64,000 nucleotides of DNA from Macrostomum hystrix (GCA_950097015.1 CATNEN010000007.1:10044001-10108000); one strand, 5' to 3'. Shown: positions 4,751-52,050, counted from the first letter of the stretch. Translations and numbers: made by a program. The notes: generated by a model from the letters alone, not told the origin.

Positions 4751-5865
4751 GTCTATACGTATAAATCATACTGTCATCAAATCAAACAGAATGCTGCTAA
4801 GTGAAACAAATGCGACACGAAGCGACTGACATTTCCAGCCAAACACCGGCTGACCCAAGCCCAACTGAGAGCAGACTTTAGAAGAGTTAAGTCCTGCTTT
4901 CTAAAAATGGTTTATATTTTCTATCGTCATAAAATAGATAGCAGTCCTAAATTCTCGGCATAGTGGCAAGGCAAGCCTGCCGCAACAGGGCCGTGATACT
5001 CGAGAATATTCGAGTCTAAAACACGGAGACGGCAAAAACTGTCTGCCGAAAACACAAAAACACGGGGGGTAACACAAGAAAGTGGGAGGACGATGGGAAA
5101 TATAGCGAACGAAAACTACTGCAGCTAAACCGAATATCAGCAGATGAATTGGAAATAGTAGCTAGGCCAAAACCAGCAGATGTATGGCGCTCTGACACAA
5201 GACGCTTACGGATAATAGCAAACAGAAGAGTGAGTGAACTGTGCGCGGTGCATTGTGGGGAAGATAAATTAAAATAATTGATAGTAAAGTGCAGCACGAA
5301 ACACTCGGGTCCCTAGCAGTCAGTCTCGCTCATCTCTACTCAGCGTAATGTTAAATTCCTATTTCAGCCGCGGACAGAGGAACTCGCTGCTTCATAGCTC
5401 AATTTCTGCGCCTCATGATTTGCTCAACACTGAAGACTTAAACCGAGTGAATTGTTTAGAATGAGCTGAGAAACAGCGAGTTAAACACACACACACAGAC
5501 GGTGGTGCCTGCCTGCTAGAGATGCAAAATAATTGAAAGGCAAACCAATAACAAAAGCTGTATGGCCTGCAGTCTGCCAAGACGCATTCGTGTGATCAGA
5601 GAGACGAACACTCGGTTAGAACAATCCTAGAATATTAGTTTAGAATCTCAGTGAATTCCTCAGGTGTCACGGTGGCAAGTTGTTCAGAGTTCAAACAGGG
5701 CCACTCATCAAGTCTGTAGCGGGCTCTGGTCAGTCTAATGCATTTATCTAGACTAACCGATTTCGAAGGCCTACTTGAAGTAGGCCTCGACTAGTGCATG
5801 GCGCGGCAGGCTTGATGAGTGGCCGTTGAGAATAGCTATATTAGCTATATTAGTCAAACAGCGCC

Positions 5866-8800
5866 CTAGTAGCTGCGACCGAACAGCGTGTAGTACTGCG
5901 GCTTGCGGCCGCACTCCGGATGGACGCACTTGGTGTCCGGCCCGATCTCGTCCGGCTGGTTGAACGGAATGCACAAGCTCTTGGCGCCCATGGCCGGGGC
6001 GCCCTCTTCTACTACAGCGTTGCGCGCGCTGTCCTTCTTGATGAGGTCCTCGCAGGCGGCGTCGCCACAGAAGGGGGCCAGGATGAGGTGCTGCTTGTCC
6101 AGGGCGGCGCACAGAGCGGGCAGATCCGGACAGACGGACAGGTGGGCGTCACGCTCAGCCTTGGCGCGGGCGAACATGTCGGTCTGGATTTTTTCCAGCA
6201 GGGACTGCAGACTGGCGGCCAGGCCATCCTCCGACAGGGTCTGCTTCTCGCCCGAGTAGCGGACAGATGCCACCACCTGCGGGGGTAGGGCGGGTGGCGT
6301 TCGTGATTTCACTTAGTCTGCCTCCCCTATGAGTCCCACACACTCCTAATGAGTCTCACCCACTCCTTATGAGTCTCACCCACTCCTTATGAGTCTCACC
6401 CACTCCTTATGAGTCTCACCCACTCCTTATGAGTCTCACCCACTCCTTATGAGTCTCACCCACTCCTTATGAGTCTCACCCACTCCTTATGAGTCTCAAC
6501 CACTCCTTATGAGTCTCACCCACTCCTTATGAGTCTCACCCACTCCTTATGAGTCTCACCCACTCCTTATACCCACTCCTTATGAGTCCCACCCACTCCT
6601 AATGAGTCTCACCCACTCCTTATGAGTCTCACCCACTCCTTATACCCACTCCTTATGAGTCTCACCCACTCCTTATGAGTCTCACCCACTCCTTATACCC
6701 ACTCCTTATGAGTCTCACCCACTCCTTATGAGTCCCACCCACTCCTAATGAGTCTCACCCACTCCTTATGAGTCTCACCCACTCCTTATGAGTCTCACCC
6801 ACTCCTTATGAGTCTCACCCACTCCTTATGAGTCTCACCCACTCCTCATGAGTCCAACCCACCCCTTATGAGTCTCACCCAACCCATATGAGTCGCAGCA
6901 TCCTATTATGAGTCGCTCCCAGTCCAGTTTTATAATTTCTTGAAATACTGCTCGGAACTCACCTGCTTAGCCGCAATATCCCTCGGTCCGACCTCGATCC
7001 TCACTGGCACGCCCTTCAGCTCCCAATGGTTGAACTTCCAGCCGGGCGAGTAGTGTTCTCGCAGGTCGGCGTGCACCCGCAGGCCGCAGGCGCGCAGCTC
7101 TGCAGCCAGGGAGTTGCACTTGTCCAGCAGCGTCTGCTTCTCCTCCTCGGTGGTGCGCACCGTGAGGCCGCAGGGCACCAGCACCAGCTGGTACTGGGCC
7201 AGCCTGGGAGGCAGCACCAGGCCCTTGTCATCTCCATGCACCATCACCATGACACCGACGGACCGGGTGGTGATGGCCCAGGAGTTCTGGTGCACGTGGC
7301 GCTTCTCGCCAGTAGCCGGATCCTCGAACAGGATGTTGAACATGCGGGAGAAGTTCTGGCCCAGGTGGTGGCTGGTGGCGCCCTGGATTGCGCGGCCGCT
7401 GGCGCTAATGTACACCTCCACGGTGGTGGTGTAGTCGCCGCCGGCGAATTTCTCTTTTTCAGTTTTGCGGCCCTTGATGACCGGGATGGCCATCAGGTTC
7501 TCGTAAATATACTCGTACATGGACAGGATCTCTAGCACCTGAGTTTGGGATAAAAGGCGATGCGCAAATCTTAACGATGTTTCGATTCTGTGCACACAAC
7601 ACTAGCCTTCGGAGGTCGGCCTGAAAGTCTGGAAGAGTGCAGTGGCTGATGCAGCCTGAAGGTCTGGGAGGGTGGCTGATGCTGCCTAGGAGTAGAAGGC
7701 TAGGGTGCAGCCTGAGAGTAGAAGGCTAGGGTGCAGCCTGGGGGTAGAAGGCTAGGGTGCAGCCTGAGAGTAGAAGGCTAGGGTGCAGCCTGAGAGTAGA
7801 AGGCTAGGGTGCAGCCTGAGAGTAGAAGGCTAGGGTGCAGCCTGAGAGTAGAAGGCTAGGGTGCAGCCTGAGAGTAGAAGGCTTGGGTGCAGCCTGAGAG
7901 TAGAAGGCTTGGGTGCAGCCTGAGAGTAGAAGGCTAGGGTGCAGCCTGAGAGTAGAAGGCTAGGGTGCAGCCTGAGAGTAGAAGGCTAGGGTGCAGCCAG
8001 GGGGCAGAAGGCTAGGGTGCAGCCAGGGGGCAGAAGGCTAGGGTGCAGCCTGGGGGTAGAAGGCTAGGGTGCAGCCTGGGGGTAGAAGGCTAGGGTACAG
8101 CCTGGGGTAGAAGGCTAGGGTGCAGCCTGGGGTAGAAGGCTAGGGTGCAGCCTGAGAGTAGAAGGCTAGGGTGCAGCCTGGGGGTAGAAGGCTAGGGTGC
8201 AGCCTGGGGTTAGAAGGCTAGGGTGCAGCCTGGGGTTAGAAGGCTAGGGTGCAGCCTGGGGTTAGAAGGCTAGGGTGCAGCCTGGGGTTAGAAGGCTAGG
8301 GTGCAGCCTGGGGTTAGAAGGCTAAGCTAGGCGCAGGAAAAGCAGCTTACCTCAACCTCGGCCTCCTCCCTCGTGGCAAAGGCGGTGTGGCCCTCGTGCC
8401 AGAGGAACTCCCTGGTGCGCAGGAACGGCTGTGGGTGTTTGAACTCCCAGCGGACCACATTATTCCACTGGTTCACCTTGAGCGGCAGGTCTCGGTAGCT
8501 CTTGATCCACTTGGCGAAGGAGGGGTACATGACGGTCTCGGAGGTGGGCCGGATGGCGATGGGCTCAGCCAGGTCGGAGCGGCCGCTGCGCGTCACCCAG
8601 GCGACCTCGGGGGCGAAGTCGGCGATGTGGGTCTTCTCCTTTTCCAGCGCTGCATTGGACACGAACATGGGGAAGTAGACATTCTGCACTCCCATGCCCT
8701 TGATGCGGTCGTCAACGTAACGCTGGACCATCTCCCAGATGGAGTAGGCCCAGGGGCGCAGGATGTAGCAGCCAGAGATGTCGTAATACTCGATGAGCTC

Positions 8801-9330
8801 CGACTTTGTGATTACCTGAGGAAAACGATGGTATTTGGGGCATCGAATTCCCATGGAGATGAAATCTGAGGATTTGGGGAGTGCTGATTTTGCGATCTGG
8901 GTGATTGCCTTACTGTGGGATTTATGACCCGACTATTGGCGACACAGGCCTTTAAAATACACTGCTCAGCTGCATTGCTCAGCACACCAAAATATGCCAG
9001 GCTCACCTGTGAGTACCAGTCGGAAAAGTTGTCCGCCTTGGCGACCTCCATGCCCAGCCGTGTCTGATGCCGCCGGCCGGCCTCGTCCTGGTCATCGGCG
9101 CCAGCCTCTGCCGCTGCCGCCGGTGTGGGCTTAGCCGGCTTTGCCCCGCCGGCCTTCTTTTCGGGCCGGCCGCCAGCCAGGTCCACCCCCGTCAGGTCTT
9201 TGTAGCGCTTCTTCAGCTCCTTCAGGTTGGAGACTTCGGCGTCCACGACCGCTTTCTCAGCGCCACCGGACTTCAGCCCGCGGATCTTATCGCCCAGCTG
9301 ATCGATTTCACTCTTCAATGCGTCGGCCAT
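5866..9330 (-). CDS. PARS: Stand-alone cytosolic prolyl-tRNA synthetase with one N-terminal WHEP domain; complement(join(5866..6276,6963..7538,8351..8815,9007..9330)), 591 aa
   Basis: [48 protein letters not shown] is a WHEP domain. Also [19 protein letters not shown], motif 2 [32 protein letters not shown] and C-terminal LFGRSY. All introns are GT-AG, phase 0. An in-frame TAA lies two codons before the ATG. Confidence 0.95.
6325..6895. repeat. Intronic minisatellite, 20-bp unit (CACTCCTTATGAGTCTCACC)
   Basis: Tandem copies inside the last ProRS intron. Confidence 0.95.
7686..8325. repeat. Intronic minisatellite, ~25-bp unit (GAGAGTAGAAGGCTAGGGTGCAGCCT)
   Basis: Tandem copies inside ProRS intron 2. 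Confidence 0.95.
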
Positions 9331-9467
9331 TGCTTAAGAAATATCTGCTTCGCTGCGGGCCAGAATCCCAAAATCAGCGCGTCAGAGCTCTTGGCACCAG
9401 AAACCCACGGCTACTTAAACTTATCAGGGTTATAAACCTGATAGACCCAGGAATCTAATGTCGTTTT

Positions 9468-9970
9468 CTCAATAAACCCAGGAATACCACAAGCTTAATA
9501 AACCCAGGAATACCCTAAGCTCAATTAACCCAGGAATACCACAAGCTCAATAAACCCAGGAATACCACAAGCTCAATAAACCCAGGAATACCACCCGCTC
9601 AATAAACCCAGGAATACCACCAGTTCAATAAACCCAGGAATACCACCAGTTCAATAAACCCAGGAATACCACCAGTTCAATAAACCCAGGAATACCACCA
9701 GCTCAATAAACCCAGGAATACCACCAGCTCAATAAACCCTGGAATACCACCAGCTCAATAAACCCAGGAATACCACCAGCTCAATAAACCCAGGAATACC
9801 ACAAGCTCAATAAACCCAGGAATACCACCAGCTCAATAAACCCTGGAATACCACCAGCTCAATAAATCCAGGAATACCACAAGCTCAATAAACCCAGGAA
9901 TACCACCAGCTCAATAAACCCAGGAATACCACAAGCTCAATAAACCCAGGAATACCACAAGCTCAATAAA
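9468..9970. repeat. Minisatellite, 26-bp unit (GCTCAATAAACCCAGGAATACCACCA) between GluRS and ProRS
   Basis: About 19 tandem copies, nearly all containing AATAAA on the + strand. Confidence 0.95.
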
Positions 9971-10586
9971 CTATTAAAACTGTAAACTTATAAAGCAAAT
10001 AAAAGAAGCAAAGGAATTGCATTTAGAACAGGAAAAACTGGTTCCCAAAAACAAGAGCTGAGGGCAGCAGCGCATAATTGTTGCATCATTCGCAACTCAA
10101 TCCTTGGCTCTGTCTTTAAATAAATATCAAGACAGCTTGCTGCAGGTAAAATATGGGATAATGAGTAGCGAAGGGACCACAAACAGCTAAAAGGTACATA
10201 CTAGCTATAAAACTAGAATAAATACAATTTTAGCATTTCAATAACAGTTAAATCCACTCTCTATATATAGTTAAATACATAACCAAGATAGTACTAGATG
10301 TATTAATGCTATAGGGAAACACACAAGCACACACAGCAAGAAGGACTTAGTGATGGCAAAGGTTACAACCGCAGGACCAGTGAAGTTTAGTTAAAATTCG
10401 TTTTCTTCATTCAAAGCTAGGATAAACCAAGTGTTTATGACATGTCATGCAGTCCACAGTGTTGCTATCGGCTTAAAAACTGAAAACTGAAAAAGGTTTC
10501 ATTAATTTAGTCGATTAGTGAAAGCCGGTAGCAATACGCCCAAAGACGCACGCCCGAAGCCCATCTGTCAGGCCCCCATGCCGCCT

Positions 10587-13500
10587 TTATTCCAGGGCCT
10601 TCAGCATGTCCGGCTTGTAGGCCTGGCCAGTGGCCTGCTTGAACTGCTCCTTGGCCTGCATGAGCACTCCCAGAGCTGACTGCAGATCCGCCTTGCTGGC
10701 GCCGGCGTCCTTCATTGAGCGCACCTTGTCTCCAGCCTCTTTGATGAGGCGCAGCTGCTCCAGGCCCGATACAGCAGGGGCCTGCTGCTGCTGCTCCAGC
10801 TGCTTGAGCAGTTCTGGCTTATGCTCCAGGCCACTCTTGTCTTTAAACTCGGACTTTAGCGCCAGCAGCTGGTTGATGGCAGTTTTCACAGCGGCCTGAA
10901 CAGAGAAGACAAGTTTGTTAGCAGCGAGTCAAAGAGTCAGAGCCGATTTCTCCTTGAAGACTGGGATTAACTAAGACATGGAGGCAGTTGTCTGAAGACT
11001 GGGGATAGCTGAGGGAGATGGCGGCAGTTGTCTGAAGACTGGGGATAGCTGAGGGAGATGGCGGCAGTTGTCTGAAGACTGGGGATAGCTGAGGGAGATG
11101 GCGGCAGTTGTTTTCCGCGTCAGACCTGGATAGTAATTTAGACAGCGACACTGAGAAATCGACATCAGGTAGTTCGACAGATTTTTAACGACTGTCATCA
11201 TCAGTGCGACAGTGAGTCATCATTGTCTGACGAGACTGCTTAATAAAGTACATTGGACAGGACCTTAATAAAGGGTCCTAATGCTTAAAATCTAAACAAT
11301 GGACACCCAGCAGCTCAGAAAAAAATTAGAGTGCACACAGATTTTGACATCAGCGAACTAGTTTGAAGTCAGGGCGACTGTGTATTCATCACTGCAACTG
11401 AAGTCCAACTGCGAGCGTCCCATTGCCCTTCCCTCTTCTCAAATTCCTCTGAAGGTTACGGATCAGAAAAAAATTAGAGTGCACACAGATGACTTGCATC
11501 ACGGAATATTGCTAAGTCTCAGTGCGACTGTGAATTCATCATCTCTGGCCTTCATTGGGATAATTCCCAGACCCCGCAATCAACAAACCTGGTCTGCCTT
11601 CTTGGCCTTCAGATCCCTGACCAGGTCGCCCTGGGCTGCGATCTTCTCCAGCAGCGGCTTGAACTGCTGCATCCCGGAGCTCGCGGATGGCGCTGCGGCA
11701 GCTGGAGCTGCAGAATGGGGAGAGGTGGTCGCATTTGCTGCAGTCGCGGAGGCCTCAGCCTTCGTCAGCAGGTCGGCCTTCCAGTCCTGGCCAGATTCTT
11801 TCTTGAACTCTGCCTTCAGCTGCAGCAGCTGGTCAACGGCTGATTTCAAAGCGGCCTGAAAAATTCGAATCGCATTAATTGAAACTTATAAGTTTTTCAC
11901 AAAATAGGATATATTTTGAGATGGAAATTGAACCTAATACCCGACCTATGCAAATAAATAACGCGCTTACATGGCTTAGTCATCGAGTCAGAAAAAAATT
12001 AGAGTGCACACAGATGACTTGCATCACAGAATATTGCTAAGTCTCAGTGCGACAGTGAATTCATCATTTGAGACCAATTTATTGAATGCCTACGACTCGC
12101 ACACGACGTCCCGAGTTCGAATTCTTAACAAGCCCATATTAACCTTCGACTCGGTTGCAGAGATAAAGCTTAAGACCTCCGGTGCAAATGAAAGTCACTG
12201 TACTTCCACATTTCATGTGATAAACTAACCTGATCCGCCTTCTTGGCCTTCAGATCCCTGACCAGGTCGCCCTGGGCTGCGATCTTCTCGAGCAGCGGCT
12301 TGAACTGCTGCAGCCCGGAGCTCGCAGATGGCGCTGCAGCTGCGGGCGCTGCGGTTGCAGCTGCTGCAGGTGCGGAGGCTTTGGCCTTCTGCAATAATTC
12401 GGCCTTCCAGTCCTGGCCGGAGACTTTCTTGAACTCTGTCTTCAGCAGCAGCAGCTGGTCCACCGCTGACTTCACAGCGGCCTGAGGATCATGGTGGCAA
12501 TATATGCGCGAATTGTGACAAGTACTTGGCTAGTCTAAATGCAACTTGGCAATTTCTTTAATGAATTTGGTCGAACCCAATGCCGCCCTGACTCCCCACT
12601 AGATATCGTCACAATGACGTCTCAGGATCATTGCGTCAGAAAAAATGAGAGTGCACACAGAGATGACTCGCATCAAGGAAAACTGCAAAGCCTCAGTGCT
12701 ATAGCAAACTCATCACCAAAGACCAAACCATAACTACTCAAAGAAGGATCTATAGTTCCTACCCTTGTGACTGGTCACAAATCTCAATCGTTCACAGCGC
12801 TTAATATACAGATGCCTAAAATCTTAGCGATGGACACCCAGCGGCTCAGAAAAAAATTAGAGTGCAGACACATTTTGACATCAGCGAACTAAGTTAGAGT
12901 CAGTGCGACTGTGTATTCATCATAGCCACTGGAGTCCAACTGCCAGATGGACTGACAACACGTAAGCGCGGGGCGTAACCGGCTGCGGCATTTTTGAAAG
13001 GCGCCTTGGGTTCACTATGGGAAACATACGATAATTATGCAATACTATATTCAATACACTATTTTTATTATCAGCTATGATTTTTTTATCAGACATTCTC
13101 TCATTTTCCATTCTAATCGCTTCATAGGCCACGGATCAGAAAAAAATTAGAGTGCACACAGATGACTTGCATCACGGAATATTGCTAAGTCTCAGTGCGA
13201 CTGTGAATTCATCATCTCTGGCCTTCATTGGGATAACTCTGAGACACCGCGATTAACAAACCTGGTCCGCCTTCTTGGCCTTCAGATCCCTGACCAGGTC
13301 GCCCTGGGCTGCGATCTTCTCCAGCAGCGGCTTGAACTGCTGCATCCCAGAGCTCGCGGATGGCGCTGCAGCTTCTGGAGCTGCGCGCGCTGGAGCTGCA
13401 GGTGCGGGAGTTTTGCTCCCAGCCGCTGCAGGTGCGGAGGCCTCGGCCTTCTTTAGCAGTTCAGCCTTCCAGTCCTGGCCGGAGAGAGTTTTGAAGTCGG

Positions 13501-16500
13501 CCTTGAGCTGTAGCAGCTTCTTCACTTCGACCTGCACCGAGTTCTGATTAACGGTCAAGAATGTCAATAAACGATAGTTTGCGAATTTATATAAAGCCTA
13601 GAAATGTACGCCGATGTGCGCAGCATGAGTTAATGGCCCAGTCTCACATTGTCAGCCTTGGCAGCCTTCAAATCGCGCACTCGATTACCCTGCTCTTCAA
13701 TCTGCCGCAGCAGGTTGAGCCCACCAGCGTCTGAGGTGCCGCCATTGCCGACTGCCACGTTCGGAGGCGTCGAGGCTTTGGCCCCCCTGGCAGCCGATGC
13801 CTTCGAGGAGCTACCACCGCTGCTTCCCTTGACCGAAGTCGCAGCCGCTGATGTGACTATATGATTGACTTCCTTGTGCCGCGAGCCGGACTTCGGCATC
13901 TCTTTTTGATGACCGTCGGGCACAGCGATGAGGTAGCACGGCATGTTGGCGCCAGAGTGCGGACTCTGGCCGGCTGGCGAGTCGCAGATGAAGAAGCCGC
14001 GCCGCTGCAGCTGGATGATGTCGCCCTTGCGAAGGCTGGCCAGCCCGGCATCGCCCAGCATCAGCTCCTGCCGCTTGGAGTTGCGGTTCACAAACTGGCG
14101 GAAGTCCTCATCCTTGCCAACTAGCGGCTTGCTAATGATGTGATCGTAGTGAACGCACACGGCCTGCGCCAGATTGTCTGGCTGCTTGGACAGCCACGTG
14201 ACCTTCTGCGTCTTCTTGTAGTCGGTGTTGTCCAGCCGCAGCTCGGCCTCCACCTCGGTGACTCGGCCGTCGGCGCCGCGGATCAGTCGAGAGACAGACA
14301 AGTTGCCCCAGTTGATGAAGGTGACCAGCTCGCCTTCGCGCAGTGTCTCAGCGTCGGCGCCTTCAATAAGAAGCTCGCGCCAGTGCCAGAGGGTCTTGGT
14401 GCCGACGTCCGGGTTTTTCTGGTGCAGCGCAACCTGCAGGAGAACGAATGATATGAAAAAGCGAGCTGGGTAAGTTTTAAATGTTGAGAAGTCACCGACT
14501 CACCTCAGAGCTGTAGGGCTCAGCCCGGTCAAAGTTAGTCACGCGGACCAGCACGGCGTCCCGCTTCAGCAGCGCTGTGTACCTCGGCGCCACCGGATCG
14601 ATGACCTTCTTATTGAATGCCCAGATCTTGTCCCACTCCATCGTAGCGTTGGACTTGGCGAAGCCCTGCGCCAGTATGAACTGGCGAAGGCCCTCCAGAG
14701 TCATGCCGCGCCTCAGAATGCCTCTGACGGTGGGAAATCGCGGATCGTCCCAGCCGTCAACCAGGCCTTCATTAACAAACCAGGTTAGCTTGCGCTTGCT
14801 CAGCACCGTGTTTTGCAGGGCCAACCGGCTGAACTCCTCCAGTAAAGGCCGGCGCAAGCCTTCGAGTAGGTTATTATTGCGGAAGCACATGTTACAGATC
14901 ACCTACTGATAGTAACCCGTGTCAGATAAGGGCAGTGCAATCAGGGACTCACCAAGCGCATCAATAAACCAATTGTACTGAGCGTCGCGATCCTTGTACT
15001 CGAGAGTGCGCAGAGCGTGGGTCACGCCTTCGAGAGAGTCAACAATCGGGCAGGCGAAGTCGTAGGTTGGATAAACTCTAAACGGGAAAGTGGCGAGGTC
15101 ATTGCTAATAACGAGCACACCGATGCGGCATGGCATCATCGAATTAAGCAAACGCAACTCACTTGTACTTGCGACCTGTGCGCAGGTGCGGCTCGTCCTT
15201 GCACCTGTATATGGTGGGATCTCGCATGCAGCCATTGTCCGACTGCATGTCAATTTTGGCGCGCACGCAGCAGCGGCAGCCCAGCTGAGTGCCGGCTTTC
15301 ATCTCCTCCCACAGGCGAATGTTCTGCTCCACGGCTGCTCGCGAGTTGATGGGAGGTTGAGAAGTGAGAAGGCAGTGGAACTCGGTGCACGCAAGCAAAT
15401 CTACTCACAATTATTTCTATTCCGCGACACGACGCGCTTCTCCCGCTCGGCCTTCATGGTGTCGGGGTCCGTGTCGTCCACGAACGCTTTGCCTTCGCGC
15501 AGCATTCGCTCGCACAGCTGCAGCATGTGATCGAAGTGGTCCGAGGTGTGTGAGAAATGATCGTAGGTGATGCCCAGAGCGGCCACGTCCTCCAGGATGA
15601 CCTTGGCAAGGTAGTAATCAGTAAACAATGGATAGTATAGTTATGCTTTCATGTACATACGAGTATACACCAAGCGATTTCATGGACATCCGAGAATAAC
15701 TTGCTTTATTATAATCAGTCTCATCAGAAACCTCTAGAGTGGAAAGCTGAGCTACGTACATTAATCATCCGCAATTACCTGCTCAAACTCAGCAGTCTCT
15801 TTGGCCGGATTAGTGTCATCAAATCGCATGATGAGTCGGCCGCCGCAGCTGTTCCGATAATGCTGGTTTAAAAGCGCGGCTTTAGCATGGCCGATGTGCA
15901 GGTAGCCGCTGGCCTCTGGTGGGAATCTGACCACGACCTCGCCGTGCACGGCGCCGGCCAGTTCGCGGAATTTGCCGCCCTCCTCGAATTTTAACCCGCT
16001 GCCGCTACTGGTGCCATCGGCTTGCGTCGCCGGCGCCTTCAACGCGCCAACAGCTGCGCCAGCTTCGGCGCTGATGAGCTTGAAGTGGCGCTCGATGGCC
16101 GGCTGAGCAGCTCCGGCCTGCCTGGCCGCCTGCCAGCGCGGACAGCAGCTGAGCTGCGCCCACACGGCCAGGTCGGCCAGGCTGAGCTGGTCGCCAACTA
16201 GGTATGTCGTGTGAGTCAGTGCGGAGGCCAGCAGGTCGGGGCGCTGGCGCAGGTGCAGCAAGGAGTAGCGAACCCAATGGGTGACCTGCAGCTGCTGCTG
16301 GACATCCTGGGCCCGCAGCAGGGAGGCGCCCACCTGGCTGCCGGCCATCTGCTCGTACAGATCCGTGCTGTTTTGTAGAGGATTTGATCGTGGCGAAACT
16401 ATTAGTCATTTCACTTCATGGGTAGTTAATTATGAATGGATTCATATGAGGGGTGAATGGCATAGTGGGCCCCGATCTTGAATCCAAGGTGAGGCCTTTT

Positions 16501-19500
16501 AAATTTTGGGTGCAGTTTTGGAGAGGGACACAGTTGAGTGTGAACTGCCCGATATACATAGTCACAAAACATGTCAATTGTGCACAAGTGTGGTGTGTCT
16601 GAATACCCAGGTACCCATGCTGCAGGCCGTCTGTTGCCAAAAAAGCCTATGGCACCAGTGGAAAACAAAAATAAACATTTTTATCACGAGGTAGACATTG
16701 CATAGGAAATCAGAAACATACTTACATGGTGGCACATGGATCAGGCTTCTTAGCAGGAAGCTTACAATAATTTGTTACAGCTTGCTGAACTAAAAGTAAA
16801 AGTGAAATTTTTATTTACTTTTGTTCTTATCTGGCTATTGTTATCCACAAAATCTGAGACAAAGACCTAACACTTTATATATAATATATTTGATACCTAA
16901 AATTTTTAACAATGAGTCTTACTGATTCCACCTTTTTTGCTTAGCAGGATACACGTGTATATAGACACATACAAAAAAACAAAAAATTACCTGGCTCATT
17001 CAATTAGTTCATACATGCGCAACACCCGGCCGACCCAGCTGAACCGGCTGGATGAAACGAGGGCCAAGCAAGGTAAGTCGCAAAAACCAATTGACCAAGT
17101 TCAAAAAAATCAAAGGGGGACCAAGGGACAAAAAAGGAAGGCGTGAAGAAAAGGAAAAAGGGGAGAGAAAAAGAGAGCAAACTAAGTTGTAAATTTATCA
17201 ATGAAATGAACTAAGTCACAAATGAGAGCACTAAGTCATAAATAGAGCAAAAACTAAGTTGCACGGCCGGCTAAGATTTGGGAGGTTGCGCATGTATGAA
17301 TTAGTTATACAAAATAAGTGTGTAGAGTATATGTTGCTATAGGCTTAATCTGTGGTCATGTGATGTGTTTTTATTTGGTCAGACAGTTAAAAAAATTTAT
17401 GTTGTTGAATTTTGAGATTTGGCTTAAAATGTGGGCAAAATGATGTCTTTTGCATATCCTTACTATCTCAATACATAAACTTGCTTTAGGTGTTTCATTC
17501 ATAACATTCACTATTTAAATAGCTTTTGAACATATAGTTCATAGTATATAGATTATAGAATATATTTCTATTTTACATAGACTAGCTACACAAAATTGAC
17601 TCAAGTTACTACTATAGCCTAAGCCTTAGCTATAGAAACAGAATCTGGCTTGAATTATACCAATAAGTAGCCATATGAAATTTCTAATTGACCATAACAT
17701 TCTGATATAATAATTAAACACACTATAAGGCAATTATATATTTGTAGAGCCATTGTATTTGCACACTTGCTATGCCAATATTACCAATACCTAGATCAGG
17801 CTACAAATTACCTTTGTTAGCTTGGATAGCCAAACTTTAGCTACCTAAGAAACATTGGGCACAATAGAGAATAACAGAAGATGTAATGTGCAATGTACAA
17901 TTTTGCACTGAGCAAAAACCTGAATACAACCAGCACAAAGCTCTTAGATATTAGCCATTCCCCAGGTCTCTGCCTCTTTTGATCTAATTTTACTTGGTGG
18001 TGCCATCAACCATGAGGCCTAATTGGGCCCCAGATATACTAAGTGGACAGCTCAGCTCCCTAAACTGACAGACCCTGAAGGCACCATGGCATTGCACTAT
18101 TCTTGTCTAGCTGGCCTACAACCCACAGCTGGACATTATTTCACTAAAAGAGATATCAATCATGACAGAGACCAAGCCTAGTTAGACTAAGTACCTAGAC
18201 AACTAGATAAAGCCTTGTTTACACATTGGCAGATGGCTAGCCCTAGTATCTGTGAATACCTAGTTCCATAAGCCAACAACCCACGTGAATACCTAGTTCC
18301 ACAAGCCAGCAACCCATGTGAATACCTAGTTCCACAAGCCAACAACCCATGTGAATACCTAGTACCACAAGCCAACAACCCACCTGGTCTCTTTTGCAGG
18401 CTATAAGACTTGGGTGGTAAAAATACAAAAGACAACTAACACAAAAAATAATGTCCTTGTCCATGCTCATGAGTGCCCACATGTCATCCACTTTGACACC
18501 ATGGCATCTTGGATCCTAGTCACTTTGTCATACACTTTTTCATCAAATGACATTTTGCCAAAATATGGTTGCCCTTGGTCACTTTGTCATATACTAATGA
18601 AGGCACTGCCAAACATTAGTCACTTTGTCATCTGCAAATCAGCTCACTCCTCATATTTAGTCACTTCGTCATCTGCCAATCGGCTAGAGCCATAAAGTAA
18701 AATAATGAGACTAAAAAGTAAAGTAAAACAAGCAAAACATTTGAAAACTGTACGTAATTGTGCATTGTCAGATTAGAGCTCGGCGCGTAAATTAACCAGC
18801 ACTGGATCGCTCCACGAGCTTAGTGATGCTGCTGTTGCTGACAGCAACCCTAATATCAGCTCAAACAAATTGATGGGGTAAATGGTCAGCTGCCAGCTCA
18901 AATTGGAGGTCAGTGGGTGCTTTTGGATGCTGAGCTTCGTGGACACAGTTGGCGACATGGACTAGCTTACTCACACCTGGCATCACTGCTGGCTCAAGGT
19001 TTTCCCTGAGGTCCAGGAGCTTTGTTTCTATGATAGCTGCTGCTGATCAAAAGCAGTGGCATTGGGCCTTGTCCTTGGCAGCAGTGACGAGTTGAAGCTT
19101 CACAGCCTTGTTAACGGAAGGTTCACATAAGTGCGCAGCTCTGCCGGCACAAAATCCTTGAACAGGATCCTGAATAGCTGTTACTGGACACTTTAATCTC
19201 GCATTTCTGTGGGTGCATCTCCAGTGCTGTGTACCATTCCTGGTATAATTAAGCCCAAGCACGAACTCTGCACCACCAGTACACTGAATTGAAAGTGCTT
19301 TGCACTTCATTGTCCCCGACTCAATCATCTCAAATTCCTCGGCAGCATCGTCAAACTGTAATTGCTGTGGCTTAGGCCTCTCCATTGACTGCTCTGCAAG
19401 AGGCGGCCAGTCAAAAAAGAGACTCAGGTCTGCGGCATACAGTTCCACCAGCAAATCAATGGCAGGATCAACAGCAGTACCAGCAGGATCACCAGCAGCA

Positions 19501-20506
19501 GTTCGGCAATCAGTACAGAACCAGGTAAATGTCTCAAGGTGCATCAACTGTCTGTACGCCACAAGTGATATACCAGTCCTGCAGAAATGTTGTTGCCAGC
19601 CATTGCATGAATTTGGCCTTTTGGCCCTCTATTCTGGTCACTGACTGTTACTATGTGATCCTACATCTACAGCTTACTAGGCTACCTACAGCTTAATGAT
19701 CTTTACAAGGACTTCACCAACCAACAAAGCAATGACCATGGTGCCACTGTTGTGCTCTGTTAGACCCCACATGAGGTATCAGTTTGCAAATGCTGTTGCG
19801 CGCTTGAGGTGGAGCCGTTTTGAAAGCAGTAATGCTGACATCAGCACTACTATGAGAGCCGCTGCAGAAACAGATCCTAGACACTTCGTCATCTTACAAC
19901 TTTGTCATCCACTTGGAAGGTAGGACACTTCGTCATCCAGCCAATTGGCATGCTTTAAAGTTTGGTCAGTTCGTCATCTACTAATAACAAGCAATCAAGT
20001 TCGTCATCAATAAAGTGAGGGTGGGGTGGTGGGGCAGAGGTGTGAACACACTTCACACTCTAAATTGTCAAAAAGAGGTGTCAAAACTGATTTCATTATA
20101 AGTGTTGAAAGATAGGTGCTAACAAGATGTGAGGAGGGGTGGGGAGTGGTGGTTCTGTTCAAACTTTGAAAACTTTTGTTTTATAGATGACGAAGTGTCC
20201 TCAAGTCTAAGTCTCTTCGTCATCCACCCTTTAAGATATTGGATAGATCGTCATCTGGATGACGAAGTGTCCAGGTACCGCAGAAACAATGCTCCTGCTG
20301 CTGCAACTAGCAGATTAGGCCTAATTGATGCCAGTCTGGCAGAGATTCCTGACAATCAAGCAGGCATAGCGCGGCTCAGACGTTTGAATTTAAATGTTTA
20401 AATAATTTGACAAACAGAACAAAAAATGCCGATTATATATGGAATTGATCATTCATGATTCTAGCACAAGCAGTATATCAGTTTAAATATACTTACGAAC
20501 TTCCAT
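10587..20506 (-). CDS. EARS: Cytosolic glutamyl-tRNA synthetase with GST-like N-terminus and five C-terminal WHEP domains; complement(join(10587..10895,11589..11855,12230..12481,13262..13543,13648..14433,14504..14859,14953..15077,15163..15334,15409..15601,15779..16367,16726..16789,20497..20506)), ~1134 aa
   Basis: [20 protein letters not shown] (HIGH), [37 protein letters not shown] (KMSKS equivalent), [19 protein letters not shown]. The WHEP repeats end ...[13 protein letters not shown]. All exon phases are consistent. The two 5' micro-exons ([13 protein letters not shown]...) are inferred from phase fit and strong GTAAGT donors and are less certain. Confidence 0.92.
10955..11112. repeat. 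Intronic tandem repeat, 40-bp unit, ~3.5 copies
   Basis: GAAGACTGGGGATAGCTGAGGGAGATGGCGGCAGTTGTCT repeated. Confidence 0.85.
11120..11223 (-). ncRNA. Box C/D snoRNA candidate (divergent, longer member)
   Basis: On - strand: ATGATGA (C), CTCACTGTCGCA-CTGA (D'), TGATGT (C'), AATTACTATCCAGGT-CTGA (D). Flanks CGTCAGA/TCTGACG are complementary. Intronic and sense to the host. Confidence 0.7.
11315..11392 (-). ncRNA. Box C/D snoRNA candidate with 18S-complementary guide
   Basis: GTGATGA...CAGTCGCC-CTGA...TGATGT...GCACTCTAATTTTTTT-CTGA, with a partial terminal stem. Confidence 0.8.
11463..11542 (-). ncRNA. Box C/D snoRNA candidate with 18S-complementary guide
   Basis: ATGATGA-ATTCACAGTCGCA-CTGA...GTGATG...GCACTCTAATTTTTTT-CTGA. 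Confidence 0.82.
11988..12067 (-). ncRNA. Box C/D snoRNA candidate with 18S-complementary guide
   Basis: Same C, D', C', D architecture and guide as 11463..11542. Confidence 0.8.
12636..12716 (-). ncRNA. Degenerate box C/D snoRNA paralogue
   Basis: GTGATGA and both CTGA boxes are retained. The D guide has one substitution (CACTCTCATTTTTT) and the D' guide has diverged. Confidence 0.55.
12846..12923 (-). ncRNA. Box C/D snoRNA candidate with 18S-complementary guide
   Basis: ATGATGA...CTGA...TGATGT...GCACTCTAATTTTTTT-CTGA, closed by an 8-bp terminal stem CCAGTGGC/GCCGCTGG (one G-U pair). Confidence 0.85.
13136..13215 (-). ncRNA. Box C/D snoRNA candidate with 18S-complementary guide
   Basis: Core identical to 11463..11542; flanking AGGCCA/TGGCCT stem. 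Confidence 0.85.
17002..17306. mobile_element. MITE-like element in GluRS intron 1
   Basis: Perfect inverted repeat TTCATACATGCGCAAC (17008-17023) / GTTGCGCATGTATGAA (17285-17300) bracketing ~260 bp of non-coding DNA. Confidence 0.6.
18252..18382. repeat. Tandem repeat, 33-bp unit x4
   Basis: GTGAATACCTAGTTCCACAAGCCAACAACCCAT repeated. Confidence 0.85.
18511..19640 (-). mobile_element. Decayed Mutator-like (MULE) transposon remnant
   Basis: Terminus GGATCCTAGTCACTTTGTCAT with subterminal CACTT(C/T)GTCAT repeats. ORF 19047..19562 has a PHD-like end (WFCTDC) and a FLYWCH-like finger ([13 protein letters not shown]...HLC). Confidence 0.5.
19872..20279. mobile_element. ~408-bp MITE with TIRs and 8-bp TSD
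   Basis: TIRs (A)GATCCTAGACACTTCGTCATC / GATGACGAAGTGTCCAGGTACC; TSD GCAGAAAC at 19864-19871 and 20280-20287. A second copy lies at 38382-40130 in the opposite orientation. Confidence 0.9.
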
Positions 20507-21350
20507 TATCTGTAGAAATTAACCTTAAAATTTACACTGGCTTCTGTTTACGCAAGCGAGAAACAAAACTAACAATACACGAGATCAAAGACTTCAAATA
20601 AATTTAGACAATCAAAACGATTGTCTTCTAATTACTTTGCGCGTGAGGCAAGACAAGTGCAAGGTACTGTTTTAAAATTGATTGCAAAAAAATTTCGTCA
20701 TTTTTTAAAACCTATTCATGCACCTAAAATATGATTTTTTACTAACATTGGATATTCAACAATAACTTTTCTTTGATTGCGCGCATTTGATTCTTATTTT
20801 AGCACGTAAAGTTGTTTGTATAGCTAAGCTGAAACAGACAAACAAAAAAAATATTTTAAATAATAACATTTCGACACAAAATTTCAGGTTATTTAAGAAA
20901 CAACCATCCGATCGAGTTCCTGAACTTGATCTAACAATTCGGACTTAGCAAGCTTCATATAATTTAACTTAGTTTGAAAAACTGCTTACCACATTTTTCA
21001 CTTTACACAATATTTGCTTAAAGTCAAAGATATTTAATTATTTCAATCAGTATCGGTCTTTGGTATCGCCTGTATCAAATATCTTGGACCCCTGTGCATT
21101 AGGACAAATGTTATCATAGCATTATACTGCGCTTTTTACTAGGCCTATGTCTACGTTATATAATCAACTCAAACAAAAATGAGTAGAACATGAACTAACT
21201 AGCATATCTCTTAGCATTTTTCTTATTTTATTTTTTAGAAGCATACAAAAATATTAGGCCCTAAGTTTGTATTGTAGCTATGACTTATGTCATGCTTCTT
21301 GAACATTAATCCTATAAAATAGGTCTAGTTCCAGTTTTAGTTGGCTAATA

Positions 21351-24300
21351 CAGCAGCGTACCTAGGATTTTGGTTTGGGGGGGATATGGAAGGACAAAAA
21401 AGTAAAAAGGAAGTTAAACCAGTTAGCACTTAGCATACTGAATAAGCTGTCAACAAAAAGTGTTTCACTAGGCCTACTTTTACTTTTGTTTTATTGTATA
21501 CGGTAATACCTAATTAGCTAATTCCAAATTGTGCGACATGTAAATTATAGCAAGTTTGTGGGAATAACGCCCGCACAGTATTACGCAGTGCGAAAATTGC
21601 ACAAACGCACTACAATGTCTAAAAGTGGGACACAATATACATGTAAATGTAGTGCAGGTTAAAGATCTGACTCGACTTGCTCACTGTATTGAGGAGGCCA
21701 CGTGCAAAGCAGCAAATGTATAGTTGACCCACAGAATACGAGCGATCAAGAGGAGCAGAGCACTGTACTGCATGCGATGAAAATTTACATTGGCAAAAGT
21801 ACTTGATTTCATTGTTACAGTAAAAAGTATGTAATTAACGGATCTTAAAATGCATATACAGTTAAGCATGAAGAGGGTATAATGATGTTTAATAATGAAG
21901 AAAAACTATTCGACTCATCCAACCTAATTGTTACAAATCAATGTAATGTCAGCCAGTAGAGATTGACAAACTGCTGAAATGGATGCACATATGGAAACTA
22001 AACTTTAGCAGCAAAATATAGCCATCTGCATGTCCATCTTGACATTTGCAGCATGCACATGTATTGTACATATTGCAAACTATAAAGAATTAACAGCGAA
22101 TGAATGCTGCACAAGTTTGCATATTCGCATGAAGAGGGCCCTCCCCATACAAAGGGTTCCACCATAGCGCCTACAAGATATACATGGACTAACTTACATA
22201 ATATGCAAAGGAAAAACGGATGATGCATGTAAATGAACAACCACTGTGACACTTTTGTTATAGAAGTCAAATGCGTTTATATAAGTCGCAAGCGCCTGTC
22301 CTTCATGGCAAAAAGCCTGATCGTCTCATCAATGTCAATGTCCAAGGTCTTGTAAATCGACATTAAAGCCAATCCAGCAAGACGCTCCTCCCCTGTGGTC
22401 GCTCTCATATAGTTCTTTAGGTATTTCATCGTTGAAAAGGAGCGCTCGGCTGTGGCTGTTGAAACTGGCAATGTCGCGAAAATCTGCAGTGCCACATAAA
22501 TATTAGGAAAAAAGGCCTGCTTGCAACTGTCCAGTGCTTCAATTACACTATGTGGGCACTCAGCGATGCTCTTTGACCCCCAGAGGTGCTGCCAGGTGGC
22601 AAACTCATGCCGGAGGTCATTGATGGAAGTAGCTGGTAGTATTCGATGCTGTTGGTAGCATTCGAGAGGCACAGAAACGTCGTCAAACTGAATAGTGTCG
22701 GTGTTGCAGCTAAAAAATGGCAACAAGTTGCTAAGCTTAGCAATTGCCCGTGTTTGCTCATTGAATCACTCATCCAACGTTCTGATGAAACCAAGCACAA
22801 ATGGGCGGAAGACAGTTTCTTCGAAGTGCTTGATGACCTGTTCATCTGACAATGTTCTGCTTTCATGCGGTAGCGGAGCATTGCAGGCAAGAGGTAGCTG
22901 GTCTATTTCCAGCGATCCACGCAGTTCCTTTGCCTCTGAGCAGATGCCTGCAGAGCTGACTGCTCGTCCAGCTGACTCACTGCTGCCCTCTTCAGCAATC
23001 CAACTGTGGAAGATTTTCTTGACACACGCGATCTGCAGTGAATGTTTAAAATGTGTTCTCTAAATATGCATTGCAGAAATTATAGACATATGGGATCAAT
23101 TACAGTATACTGTAAGTTGTGTGTCTAAGGCACCGCTGTTGTTTGTTGCATTCATATATCTTAGGCATATTGTAGGAGTATGTGATTATTTGTAGTGTTA
23201 GTATTCATGTATATATGTATTTTTTTCGACTGCACATGTAAACTTGCCTGCATCCAACAGTCAGTCAAGGAAATTGAGCTTTGCTGTAGGCTCGCAGCAA
23301 CTGGAGCAGTCGCAATAAAGACGTGCTTCAGCATTGTCATGCAGATAACAAACTCGGAGCGTGAAATGGCCGCCAGAAACGATGTTGCTCTGGCACGTGT
23401 TTCCGCATCCTCTATCGTGGTCGTGGACAGTTCTTTCAATGCGACAGCAGTGGTGGGGTACAGTTCCGCAAATCGTTGACCAGCATCAAGATGCTCCATC
23501 CAGCTAGTATCAATCAGCTTCTGTAAGAAACGTTGTAAGCAACGTATTAATACATGTAAATATATACAAGCGTACGTATGTGCATATATATTTTTTTGCA
23601 GTGCCGTATCACAATTTCGAAACATTTTTTATTAACTTTTATCCTTGACACAACACAGATTCTTACATTACAATTCCAGTTAGCTAACCCCTATATGTAC
23701 AACAATTTTGTGATTAATACTAAATGTTGCAAACTTACCAAAAGTGTTTGCTTCCGTGCATCAGGAAAAATTGCAAGAACTGCTTGTTTATAGTGCTCTG
23801 TTCGCTTAGCCGATGCTCGAAAGAAGTTTGCGATTGAGCCCATTACGGCAAATGAGCTCTGTACAGCCGGAATCCTTGATGCATGGGTAATGGCCAAGTT
23901 GAGCCCATGGGACAGGCAGGGAAAGAAGTCTGCAACCGCAAACTGCTGACCAAACTGCGTGCGAATTATGTTTTGTACCCCTCGATTTGCTCCTGACATG
24001 TTAGGAGCTCCGTCATATGCTTGGCCAATGACAGCTGCCTTGAGACCAGCATTCTGCAGGAAGGTTGCAAGTGCTTCTGCAACAGCTGCACCTGTTGTCT
24101 GGCTCACCACAACAAATCCCAGAAATGACTCTTTGATTTTATGTTCACTTGAAGAGCCGATGCCTTTGCAAACGTACCGAAGGGAGATGGACAACTGCTC
24201 TTGTCGAGATATGTCCATTGTCTCATCAGCCATCACAGTAACAACTCCGGCATTGTTTGCCTCAGTGACAACATGTTGCTGGATCTGCTGTCCGATGCAA

Positions 24301-49889: not shown

Positions 49890-51452
49890 TTACCCCACTG
49901 CCTCAGCCCTTATCTGCATCACTTACCCCACTGCCTCAGCCCTTCACTGCATCACTTACCCCACTGCCTTAGCCCTTATCTGCATCAGCTACCCCACTGC
50001 CTCAGCCCTTATCTGCATCACTTACCCCACTGCCTCAGCCCTTCACTGCATCACTTACCCCACTGCCTTAGCCCTTATCTGCATCAGCTACCCCACTGCC
50101 TCAGCCCTTATCTGCATCACTTACCCCACTGCCTCAGCCCTTCACTGCATCACTTACCCCACTGCCTCAGCCCTTATATGCATCACTTACCCCACTGCCT
50201 CAGCCCTTATCTGCATCAGCTACCCCACTGCCTCAGCCCTTCACTGCATCACTTACCCCACTGCCTCAGCCCTTCACTGCATCACTTACCCCACTGCCTC
50301 AGCCCTTCACTGCATCACTTACCCCACTGCCTCAGCCCTTCACTGCATCACTTACCCCACTGCCTCAGCCCTTCACTGCATCACTTACCCCACTGCCTCA
50401 GCCCTTCACTGCATCACTTACCCCACTGCCTCAGCCCTTCACTGCATCAGCTATCCCACTGCCTCAGCCCTTCACTGCATCAGCTATCCCACTGCCTCAG
50501 CCCTTCACTGCATCACTTACCCCACTGCCTCAGCCCTTATCTGCATCAGCTACCCCACTGCCTCAGCCCTTCACTGCATCACTTACCCCACTGCCTCAGC
50601 CCTTCACTGCATCAGCTACCCCACTGCCTCAGCCCTTATCTGCATCAGTTACCCCACTGCCCCACTGCCCCAGACTTCACTGCATCACTTATCCCACTGC
50701 CTCAGCCCTTATCTGCATCACTTACCCCACTGCCTTAGCCCTTATCTGCATCAGCTACCCCACTGCCTCAGCCCTTATCTGCATCACTTACCCCACTGCC
50801 TCAGCCCTTCACTGCATCACTTACCCCACTGCCTCAGCCCTTATATGCATCACTTACCCCACTGCCTCAGCCCTTATCTGCATCAGCTACCCCACTGCCT
50901 CAGCCCTTCACTGCATCACTTACCCCACTGCCTCAGCCCTTCACTGCATCACTTACCCCACTGCCTCAGCCCTTCACTGCATCACTTACCCCACTGCCTC
51001 AGCCCTTATCTGCATCAGCTACCCCACTGCCTCAGCCCTTCACTGCATCACTTACCCCACTGCCTCAGCCCTTCACTGCATCAGCTACCCCACTGCCTCA
51101 GCCCTTATCTGCATCAGTTACCCCACTGCCCCACTGCCCCAGACTTCACTGCATCAGTTACCCCACTGCCCCACTGCCCCAGACTTCACTGCATCAGTTA
51201 CCCCACTGCCTTAGCCCTTATCTGCATCAGTTACCCCACTGCCCCACTGCCCCAGACTTCACTGCATCAGTTACCCCACTGCCTTAGCCCTTATCTGCAT
51301 CAGCTACCCCACTGCCTCAGCCCTTATCTGCATCAGTTACCCCACTGCCCCACTGCCCCAGACTTCACTGCATCAGTTACCCCACTGCCTTAGCCCTTAT
51401 CTGCATCAGCTACCCCACTGCCCCAGCCCTTCACTGCATCCGTTATCCCACT
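49890..51452. repeat. Minisatellite, 33-bp unit (TTACCCCACTGCCTCAGCCCTTCACTGCATCAC)
   Basis: About 45 copies between convergent genes. Confidence 0.95.
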
Positions 51453-52050
51453 GCTGATTTATATTGTGCATCCATCGGAATCGGTAAGCCAATGCAGTTG
51501 CAGAAAGAGGCAATTCAATTAGCCCAATTGTTATTTATCCAGTGGATAATTTATCCAATAGACTGTTTGGCGCCCGGCTGATTTGACGGTATATTTAGCT
51601 GATCATATAAGCGCTACTGTCTACTGCGAGTAGCATTTGCTGCAAATTGTAACTCAACCAGTAAAGTACAAAACAAGAAGCAATTAAGCGACTAAAGTGG
51701 AGGGGGTTAGCTGTACTTCAGTTCGCGCTGTGCTGGTTAAACTCTTGACATGTGGGCCGCCTGTAAAAGGTGCCACACGGACCATCGCTGCCTAAAGCTT
51801 CACACAGACCGCGATCTGCTAATGTACATGCTAGGGTTAGGAAGTCAAAGTTAAGGCCTCGACCTGACAGTTTCAGTATAATTTTTCAAAATCGCACTGA
51901 CAAAAGGCGAAGTTTTAGTCAAAGTCAAGTAAGATTTTTTGGACAAACAGCGCTCTCCTACTTAGATCAGACAATAGACATAAATTCAGAAAACTAGTTA
52001 AACGATCAGTCATTAGCTACTACCAGTAGTGTCATAAAAGTGTTTTTCAG

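Follow-up and report, generated by a model that had tools for sequence, protein, structure and literature searches.

Two synthetase genes at one locus

Within a 64,000-nt stretch of the genome of the flatworm Macrostomum hystrix (hereafter the window), we studied a locus at which glutamyl-tRNA synthetase (GluRS) and prolyl-tRNA synthetase (ProRS), the two enzymes joined through WHEP domains in the bifunctional protein EPRS, are encoded by two neighbouring genes. All features of the locus lie on the minus strand. Splice sites were set by reading frame and homology and compared with RNA joints where possible, domains were assigned by running Pfam on single exons, and the copy number of GluRS and ProRS was determined in the whole 220-Mb assembly. 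For the RNA evidence, assembled Logan contigs from public runs (four runs from two studies) were aligned over positions 8300-13600. These contigs derive from RNA, since the runs contain only the exonic part of the stretch and the aligned contigs skip introns with GT..AG ends. A scan of 5000-21000 against Rfam returned no family at gathering score.

The upstream gene encodes GluRS. Its first coding exon with homology support (15779..16367) encodes a GST_C-like part and the first portion of the class I catalytic domain, including the HIGH motif, as indicated by Pfam matches (GST_C, tRNA-synt_1c) and by tblastn colinearity with fused EPRS (P0002 and P0008); it contains an ATG at 16348, follows a candidate acceptor AG just before 16367 and ends at a donor after 15779, and its upstream limit is provisional. 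The catalytic and anticodon-binding parts continue through exons 15601-15409, 15334-15163, 15077-14953, 14859-14504 and 14433-13648, with tRNA-synt_1c extending over five exons of the gene, followed by the GluRS/GlnRS anticodon-binding domain (tRNA-synt_1c_C2) and WHEP; the last of these exons closes with the first half of WHEP1. Three repeat exons come next (13543-13262, 12481-12230 and 11855-11589; boundaries compared with RNA joints), each completing one WHEP with its second half and, after an Ala/Pro-rich linker, beginning another with its first half; WHEP-TRS matches each of these exons in two stretches. The last exon (10587..10895) supplies the second half of WHEP4, all of WHEP5 and the stop codon TAA 10589-10587, at which the frame closes; the WHEP-TRS pieces of the gene sum to five. 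WHEP1-4 are each interrupted by a phase-0 intron after ...KAD(N/Q), and WHEP5 lies uninterrupted in the terminal exon. All four WHEP-exon donors (after 13648, 13262, 12230 and 11589) are in phase 0, and three of the four introns were seen as joints in RNA contigs (12480/13261, 11854/12229 and 10894/11588). Counted from ATG 16348 the gene has 1103 codons, or 1113 if a candidate mini-exon described below is joined at the AG before 16367.

The ProRS gene begins 1256 nt downstream of the GluRS stop on the same strand, at ATG 9330-9328; the codon before it is GCA, itself preceded by an in-frame TAA (9336-9334). Its coding exons, 9330-9007 (Met, WHEP and linker), 8815-8351, 7538-6963 and 6276-5866 (with the stop), amount to 591 codons and carry one whole WHEP (WHEP-TRS) and the class II set tRNA-synt_2b, HGTP_anticodon and ProRS-C_1; the first intron was seen as an RNA joint (8813/9005). 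When ProRS exon 2 was used in a homology search, the best identity was 81% and the only named flatworm was Schistosoma turkestanicum (P0006). A further protein homology search gave mostly fungal and protist ProRS, with no Macrostomum relative among the matches. ProRS exon 1 and the terminal GluRS exon, each used by itself as a query, had no match in a search limited by length to proteins shorter than the full enzymes.

Transcripts of the two genes were recovered as separate contigs. More specifically, one contig from run X5 (973 nt) and one from run X6 (909 nt) begin with 16 nt of the preceding WHEP exon and then follow the genome colinearly through the GluRS TAA, from 10898 to 9942 in X5 and from 10898 to 10006 in X6, with no differing letters in the former and two in the latter, none of them at the stop. 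It follows that the stop is present in the mRNA, that the terminal exon is unspliced and that the 3' untranslated region (3'UTR) is at least 645 nt long. A second pair of contigs (2761 nt in X5 and 2838 nt in X6) contains ProRS exon 2, the joint of intron 8816-9006 and exon 1 up to 9353, followed by 22 letters that are unmatched at the locus. Contig depth was similar for the ProRS and GluRS mRNAs (62.8 versus 50.8 in X5, 26.3 versus 26.7 in X6), which is weak evidence for co-transcription, depth being a poor measure. A joint from GluRS to ProRS, including the splicing of a WHEP exon into the ProRS exon that the first-pass annotation (made from the sequence alone) had named as the transcript to look for, was found in none of the contigs of the four runs of two studies; all four joints seen are those of ordinary introns. 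Loose ends of run X1 contigs at 8783 and 10781 were considered as isoforms and rejected: their sequences are not in this genome, and we take them to come from a related organism whose sequence has diverged.

The assembly contains one GluRS locus (a single strong match) and one ProRS locus, and no second copy of either, fused or otherwise, was found in it; therefore no fused paralogue makes up for the split. The locus holds two separate open reading frames that give two separate mature mRNAs, and both genes are single-copy. This would be undone if the stops or the 1.25-kb spacer had arisen in assembly, or were a lesion peculiar to the strain, and hid a fused EPRS. Nothing specific was found that speaks for such an artefact, beyond the general caveat that attaches to an assembly built from long reads, whereas independent contigs of RNA origin agree with the assembly at both stop regions and over the 3'UTR, the runs of the second study also cover the 3'UTR, and the leader described below is joined exactly at an AG. 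Since the contigs of X5 and X6 agree with the assembly letter for letter at the two TAA codons, the stops are not the assembly errors that the first-pass annotation had envisaged, and the artefact explanation is effectively refuted. Most of that annotation's description of the two genes stands: the GluRS frame ends after its fifth WHEP, with RNA contigs running through the stop, and ProRS has its own ATG about 1.25 kb downstream, one WHEP, an upstream in-frame TAA and a length of 591 residues. The length it gave for GluRS (~1134 residues) does not agree with our model.

A spliced leader on the ProRS mRNA

The 22 unmatched letters of the ProRS contigs, together with G 9353, read in mRNA sense GCGAAGACTCAATTTATTGCATG, which equals the 3'-terminal 23 nt of the Macrostomum spliced leader (SL). 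The join lies at the acceptor GGCCCGCAG|CGAAG (AG 9354-9353), 22 nt upstream of the ProRS ATG. This 23-mer has 29 copies in the genome, mostly in tandem arrays with a period of ~11.6 kb, and in one copy, an SL RNA gene, CGGTCTCTTACT comes before it and a GTAAG donor after it. In Macrostomum lignano the SL is 35 nt long, CGGTCTCTTACTGCGAAGACTCAATTTATTGCATG (PMC8629364); given the two flanks of the 23-mer, the SL exon of M. hystrix is therefore identical to it. The 5' end of the ProRS mRNA is a spliced leader, trans-spliced at AG 9354/9353. Trans-splicing of ProRS had been proposed as a possibility in the first-pass annotation, and the leader on the X5 and X6 contigs bears this out, although not at the acceptors 2 or 14 nt before the ATG where it had been expected.

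Downstream of the leader, the ProRS 5'UTR seen in the X5 and X6 contigs measures 22 nt (9331..9352) and includes the in-frame TAA 9336-9334. With its own ATG and this stop within the 5'UTR of the mature mRNA, the ProRS frame is not readable from upstream. The AUG that ends the SL is out of frame with ProRS and opens an upstream open reading frame (uORF) of 15 codons that overlaps the ProRS AUG, and therefore translation of ProRS must use leaky scanning or reinitiation.

We then consider whether splicing could rebuild the fusion. The earlier statement holds that the WHEP donors are in phase 0, that the acceptor TTCTTAAG|CA requires phase 1 and that more distal acceptors take in the TAA. A phase-0 WHEP donor cis-spliced onto the SL acceptor would run into a stop after 15 codons, as in the SL uORF, and the ProRS-frame reading of the 5'UTR meets the TAA. 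There are, in addition, several AG dinucleotides at codon boundaries within ProRS exon 1, which are in frame for the phase-0 WHEP donors, so that the fission could be incomplete: a fused GluRS-WHEPn-ProRS would also be made when the terminal GluRS exon is skipped and one of these internal acceptors is used. Contigs are unable to show the absence of such rare isoforms, and EPRS of Nematostella reportedly uses alternative splicing of its WHEPs. Weighed against this, the internal AGs have no polypyrimidine tracts and are used by no contig, a joint of that kind is missing from the four runs of two studies, and the acceptor that is in use brings in an in-frame TAA and would leave a phase-0 donor in the wrong frame. 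We consider residual production of a fused protein very unlikely.

The WHEPs themselves indicate where the gene was cut. WHEP2-4 are 75-90% identical to one another and, judged by these identities, look like recent duplicates. WHEP5 and the ProRS WHEP share only 30-40% identity with each other and with every other WHEP, and therefore the cut fell between two old, distinct WHEPs. We conclude with high confidence that an ancestral bifunctional EPRS was split inside its WHEP linker into two adjacent same-strand genes, one for GST_C-GluRS-(WHEP)5 and one for an SL-trans-spliced Met-WHEP-ProRS of 591 residues. The RNA contigs and the single-copy loci thus uphold a fission within the linker that kept the ancestral gene order, as had first been suggested.

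The spacer, probable co-transcription and the GluRS 5' end

Between the two frames lie three segments. Unique sequence of the GluRS 3'UTR (9972..10586; 615 nt, single copy in the genome), through which the RNA contigs are colinear to 9942 (X5) and 10006 (X6), is followed by a 26-bp minisatellite of 19.4 copies (9468..9971; Tandem Repeats Finder, TRF) whose unit is found in the genome only at this locus, and then by an outron or intercistronic spacer (9353..9467), delimited by a drop in depth and by the SL join, which ends in the trans-splice acceptor GGCCCGCAG (AG 9354-9353). A transposon in the spacer was considered and rejected, as both the 3'UTR and the minisatellite are unique to the locus. 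Minisatellites with units of 20-40 bp are packed into the introns of the locus as well as into this spacer (6328-6894, 7680-8324, 9468-9971, 10978-11111 and 18252-18383).

RNA word depth over the minisatellite is 25-41 in X5, where the 3'UTR has 50.8, and 10-15 in X6, where the 3'UTR has 26.7; in the bin 9362-9538 it falls to 1.6 (X5) and 0.5 (X6). Given that its unit is unique to the locus, this depth means that the minisatellite is transcribed, and the repeat probably forms the distal end of the GluRS 3'UTR. In the simplest reading, with the GluRS 3' end placed by RNA depth, the 3'UTR of the GluRS mRNA is ~1.05-1.1 kb long and runs through the minisatellite. Since depth persists through the repeat and drops within 9362-9538, the gap from the last GluRS coverage to the SL acceptor would be ~190 nt at most. 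Operons of M. lignano were recognized by an SL-spliced downstream gene and a repeat-adjusted distance below 1 kb (mode near 100 bp), their spacers being filled with repeats (PMC8629364), and the GluRS/ProRS pair fits this published criterion. On balance we favour co-transcription of the pair as a two-gene operon resolved by the SL, although with less assurance than the fission itself; the dicistronic unit that the first-pass annotation had suggested is thus plausible. If so, the two halves would stay co-regulated without a new promoter for ProRS.

A number of points weigh against a split EPRS transcribed as an operon. Regarding the mRNAs, Logan contigs drop rare isoforms, so that a minor fused transcript could escape, the SL junction was seen in two runs of one study only, and the separate polypeptides of ~1100 and 591 residues are predictions from the genes and RNA contigs. 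Regarding the transcription unit, the GluRS 5' end is provisional, the spacer between GluRS and ProRS contains no canonical AATAAA, the GluRS 3' end is an estimate from RNA coverage, and no read or contig bridges 9354-9540. SL trans-splicing also occurs on monocistronic genes, with only about 40% of M. lignano SL genes in operons (PMC8629364). The last three of these points, including the roughly 60% of SL-trans-spliced M. lignano genes that are not assigned to operons, speak for a different arrangement in which the fission is real and the two genes are independent transcription units, with ProRS driven by its own promoter, inside the minisatellite or a short way downstream of it, and a short outron that is simply SL trans-spliced. 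That arrangement would have to fit a terminator and a promoter into at most ~190 nt, given a minisatellite depth near that of the GluRS 3'UTR; the near-equal contig depth of the two mRNAs in both runs and the agreement of the pair with the published operon criterion count against it as well. We regard independent transcription as possible and rather unlikely, and retain the SL-resolved operon as the better account of the pair.

For the 5' end of GluRS, the first-pass annotation had proposed a start at 20506, in a candidate coding mini-exon of 11 nt (20496..20506), where ATGGAAGTTCG|GTAAGT is present and the phase fits the acceptor before 16367; our analysis did not confirm this start. The mini-exon has no homology support, and a homology search for GST-N exons over 16400-21500 gave only noise. 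By arithmetic, the RNA contigs carry 82-203 nt of extra 5' sequence beyond exon 16367-15779. The candidate start ATG 20506 is preceded by TTTCTACAG|ATA; hypothetically, an SL joined there would place the SL AUG in frame (M-I-M-E-V...). Between the mini-exon candidate and the first homology-supported exon, an open frame of 193 codons (19050-19628, minus strand; 171 codons from a GTG) is Cys/His-rich and has no Pfam match; it may represent a gene of its own, or else a domesticated element inside a 4-kb intron. Elsewhere in the window, three large minisatellite arrays lie in 49890-54134 (units of 33, 34 and 32 bp in 46, 33 and 11.5 copies) with opposite strand composition, and they account for a sharp swing of GC skew in the composition profile of the window.

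Fission of EPRS and its parallels

Among the aminoacyl-tRNA synthetases of animals, EPRS is, to our knowledge, the only fused one. Stoichiometry, membership in the multisynthetase complex and regulatory functions of the WHEP linker have been proposed as reasons for its staying fused. In the route that we propose for its fission in M. hystrix, an intron in the linker between WHEP5 and WHEP6 (the ProRS WHEP) would have lost its 5' splice site. A single base distinguishes the stop context CTG GA|ATAAAG from a phase-2 donor GA|GTAAAG, and the same G-to-A change would create the GAA TAA stop. It takes precisely a phase-2 donor to bring the acceptor 9354/9353 into the ProRS frame (one base and seven codons, then the ATG); once orphaned, this acceptor would have become the trans-splice acceptor, with the former intron turned into 3'UTR and outron and the two halves still co-transcribed as an operon. 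The phase agreement has a one in three chance of arising anyway, and a single step leads from GTAA to any TAA stop, so that this donor-loss mechanism is speculative and offered only as a lead from the sequence. It fits the nematode parallel discussed below, in that nematodes are also a phylum with SL operons and their ProRS also retains one WHEP. That SL trans-splicing made this fission possible, and that the locus preserves an intermediate state, is a doubtful proposition that we put forward tentatively. If true, operon-capable genomes would be predisposed to split fused genes, and ProRS would need one WHEP.

Fused EPRS proteins of the bird Struthio (P0002), the butterfly Pieris (P0008) and the flatworm Schistosoma turkestanicum (P0006) align colinearly across both M. 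hystrix genes. The domains and their order are identical to those of fused animal EPRS; the difference is that in M. hystrix WHEP5 and WHEP6 are set apart by a stop, a 3'UTR, a minisatellite, an SL acceptor and a new initiator Met. In the S. turkestanicum protein the GluRS C-terminus passes through a linker without any WHEP, unlike that of M. hystrix, into ProRS, and S. mansoni likewise has a linked, WHEP-less EPRS (PMC4072531). Because Schistosoma keeps a fused EPRS, the fission in M. hystrix is not flatworm-wide and is independent of the nematode one, as the first-pass annotation had supposed.

The closest likeness is with rhabditine nematodes, in which EPRS is also broken in the WHEP linker, with a WHEP array on GluRS and exactly one N-terminal WHEP on ProRS, in a phylum that also has SL trans-splicing and operons. 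Among 18 protostomes, unlinked genes for GluRS (ERS) and ProRS (PRS) were reported only in Caenorhabditis elegans, with six WHEPs on ERS and one on PRS (Ray and Fox 2014, PMC4072531), and the fission was later extended to other Rhabditina (Havrylenko and Mirande 2015, PMC4394549). Our literature search found EPRS fission reported only in rhabditine nematodes; it turned up no paper on a split EPRS in flatworms or on SL operons as a route to gene fission. Apart from the phylum, the two cases differ in their WHEP counts (6+1 in C. elegans and 5+1 in M. hystrix) and in their arrangement: the M. hystrix halves are still adjacent in the ancestral order, the downstream one being SL-trans-spliced, whereas the C. 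elegans genes presumably lie on different chromosomes. The multisynthetase complex of C. elegans retains GluRS via its GST-like domain, without ProRS (PMC4394549), and by analogy we infer that the M. hystrix ProRS, having no GST-like domain, would no longer be tethered to the complex. A stand-alone Met-WHEP-ProRS of 586 residues is also found in Strongyloides stercoralis, a non-rhabditine nematode (P0234, UniRef A0A0K0EAL6), and judged by this sequence the nematode fission may be wider than Caenorhabditis or Rhabditina.

With the SL-resolved operons of M. lignano (Ustyantsev and Berezikov 2021, PMC8629364), the pair shares same-strand neighbours, the identical 35-nt SL on the downstream gene, a repeat-filled spacer and, as far as RNA depth indicates, a short repeat-adjusted distance. 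It differs from them in that its cistrons are the halves of what is one gene in most animals, and in that the operon here is proposed from spacing. The locus offers a testable route to gene fission without a new promoter in operon-bearing eukaryotes, in a genus, Macrostomum, that is a transgenic-capable model. Set beside the nematodes, a second, independent fission in a flatworm is a natural replicate in which the halves are still adjacent, and the 'n + 1' partition of WHEPs, which recurs here, suggests that the places at which the fusion can be broken are constrained.

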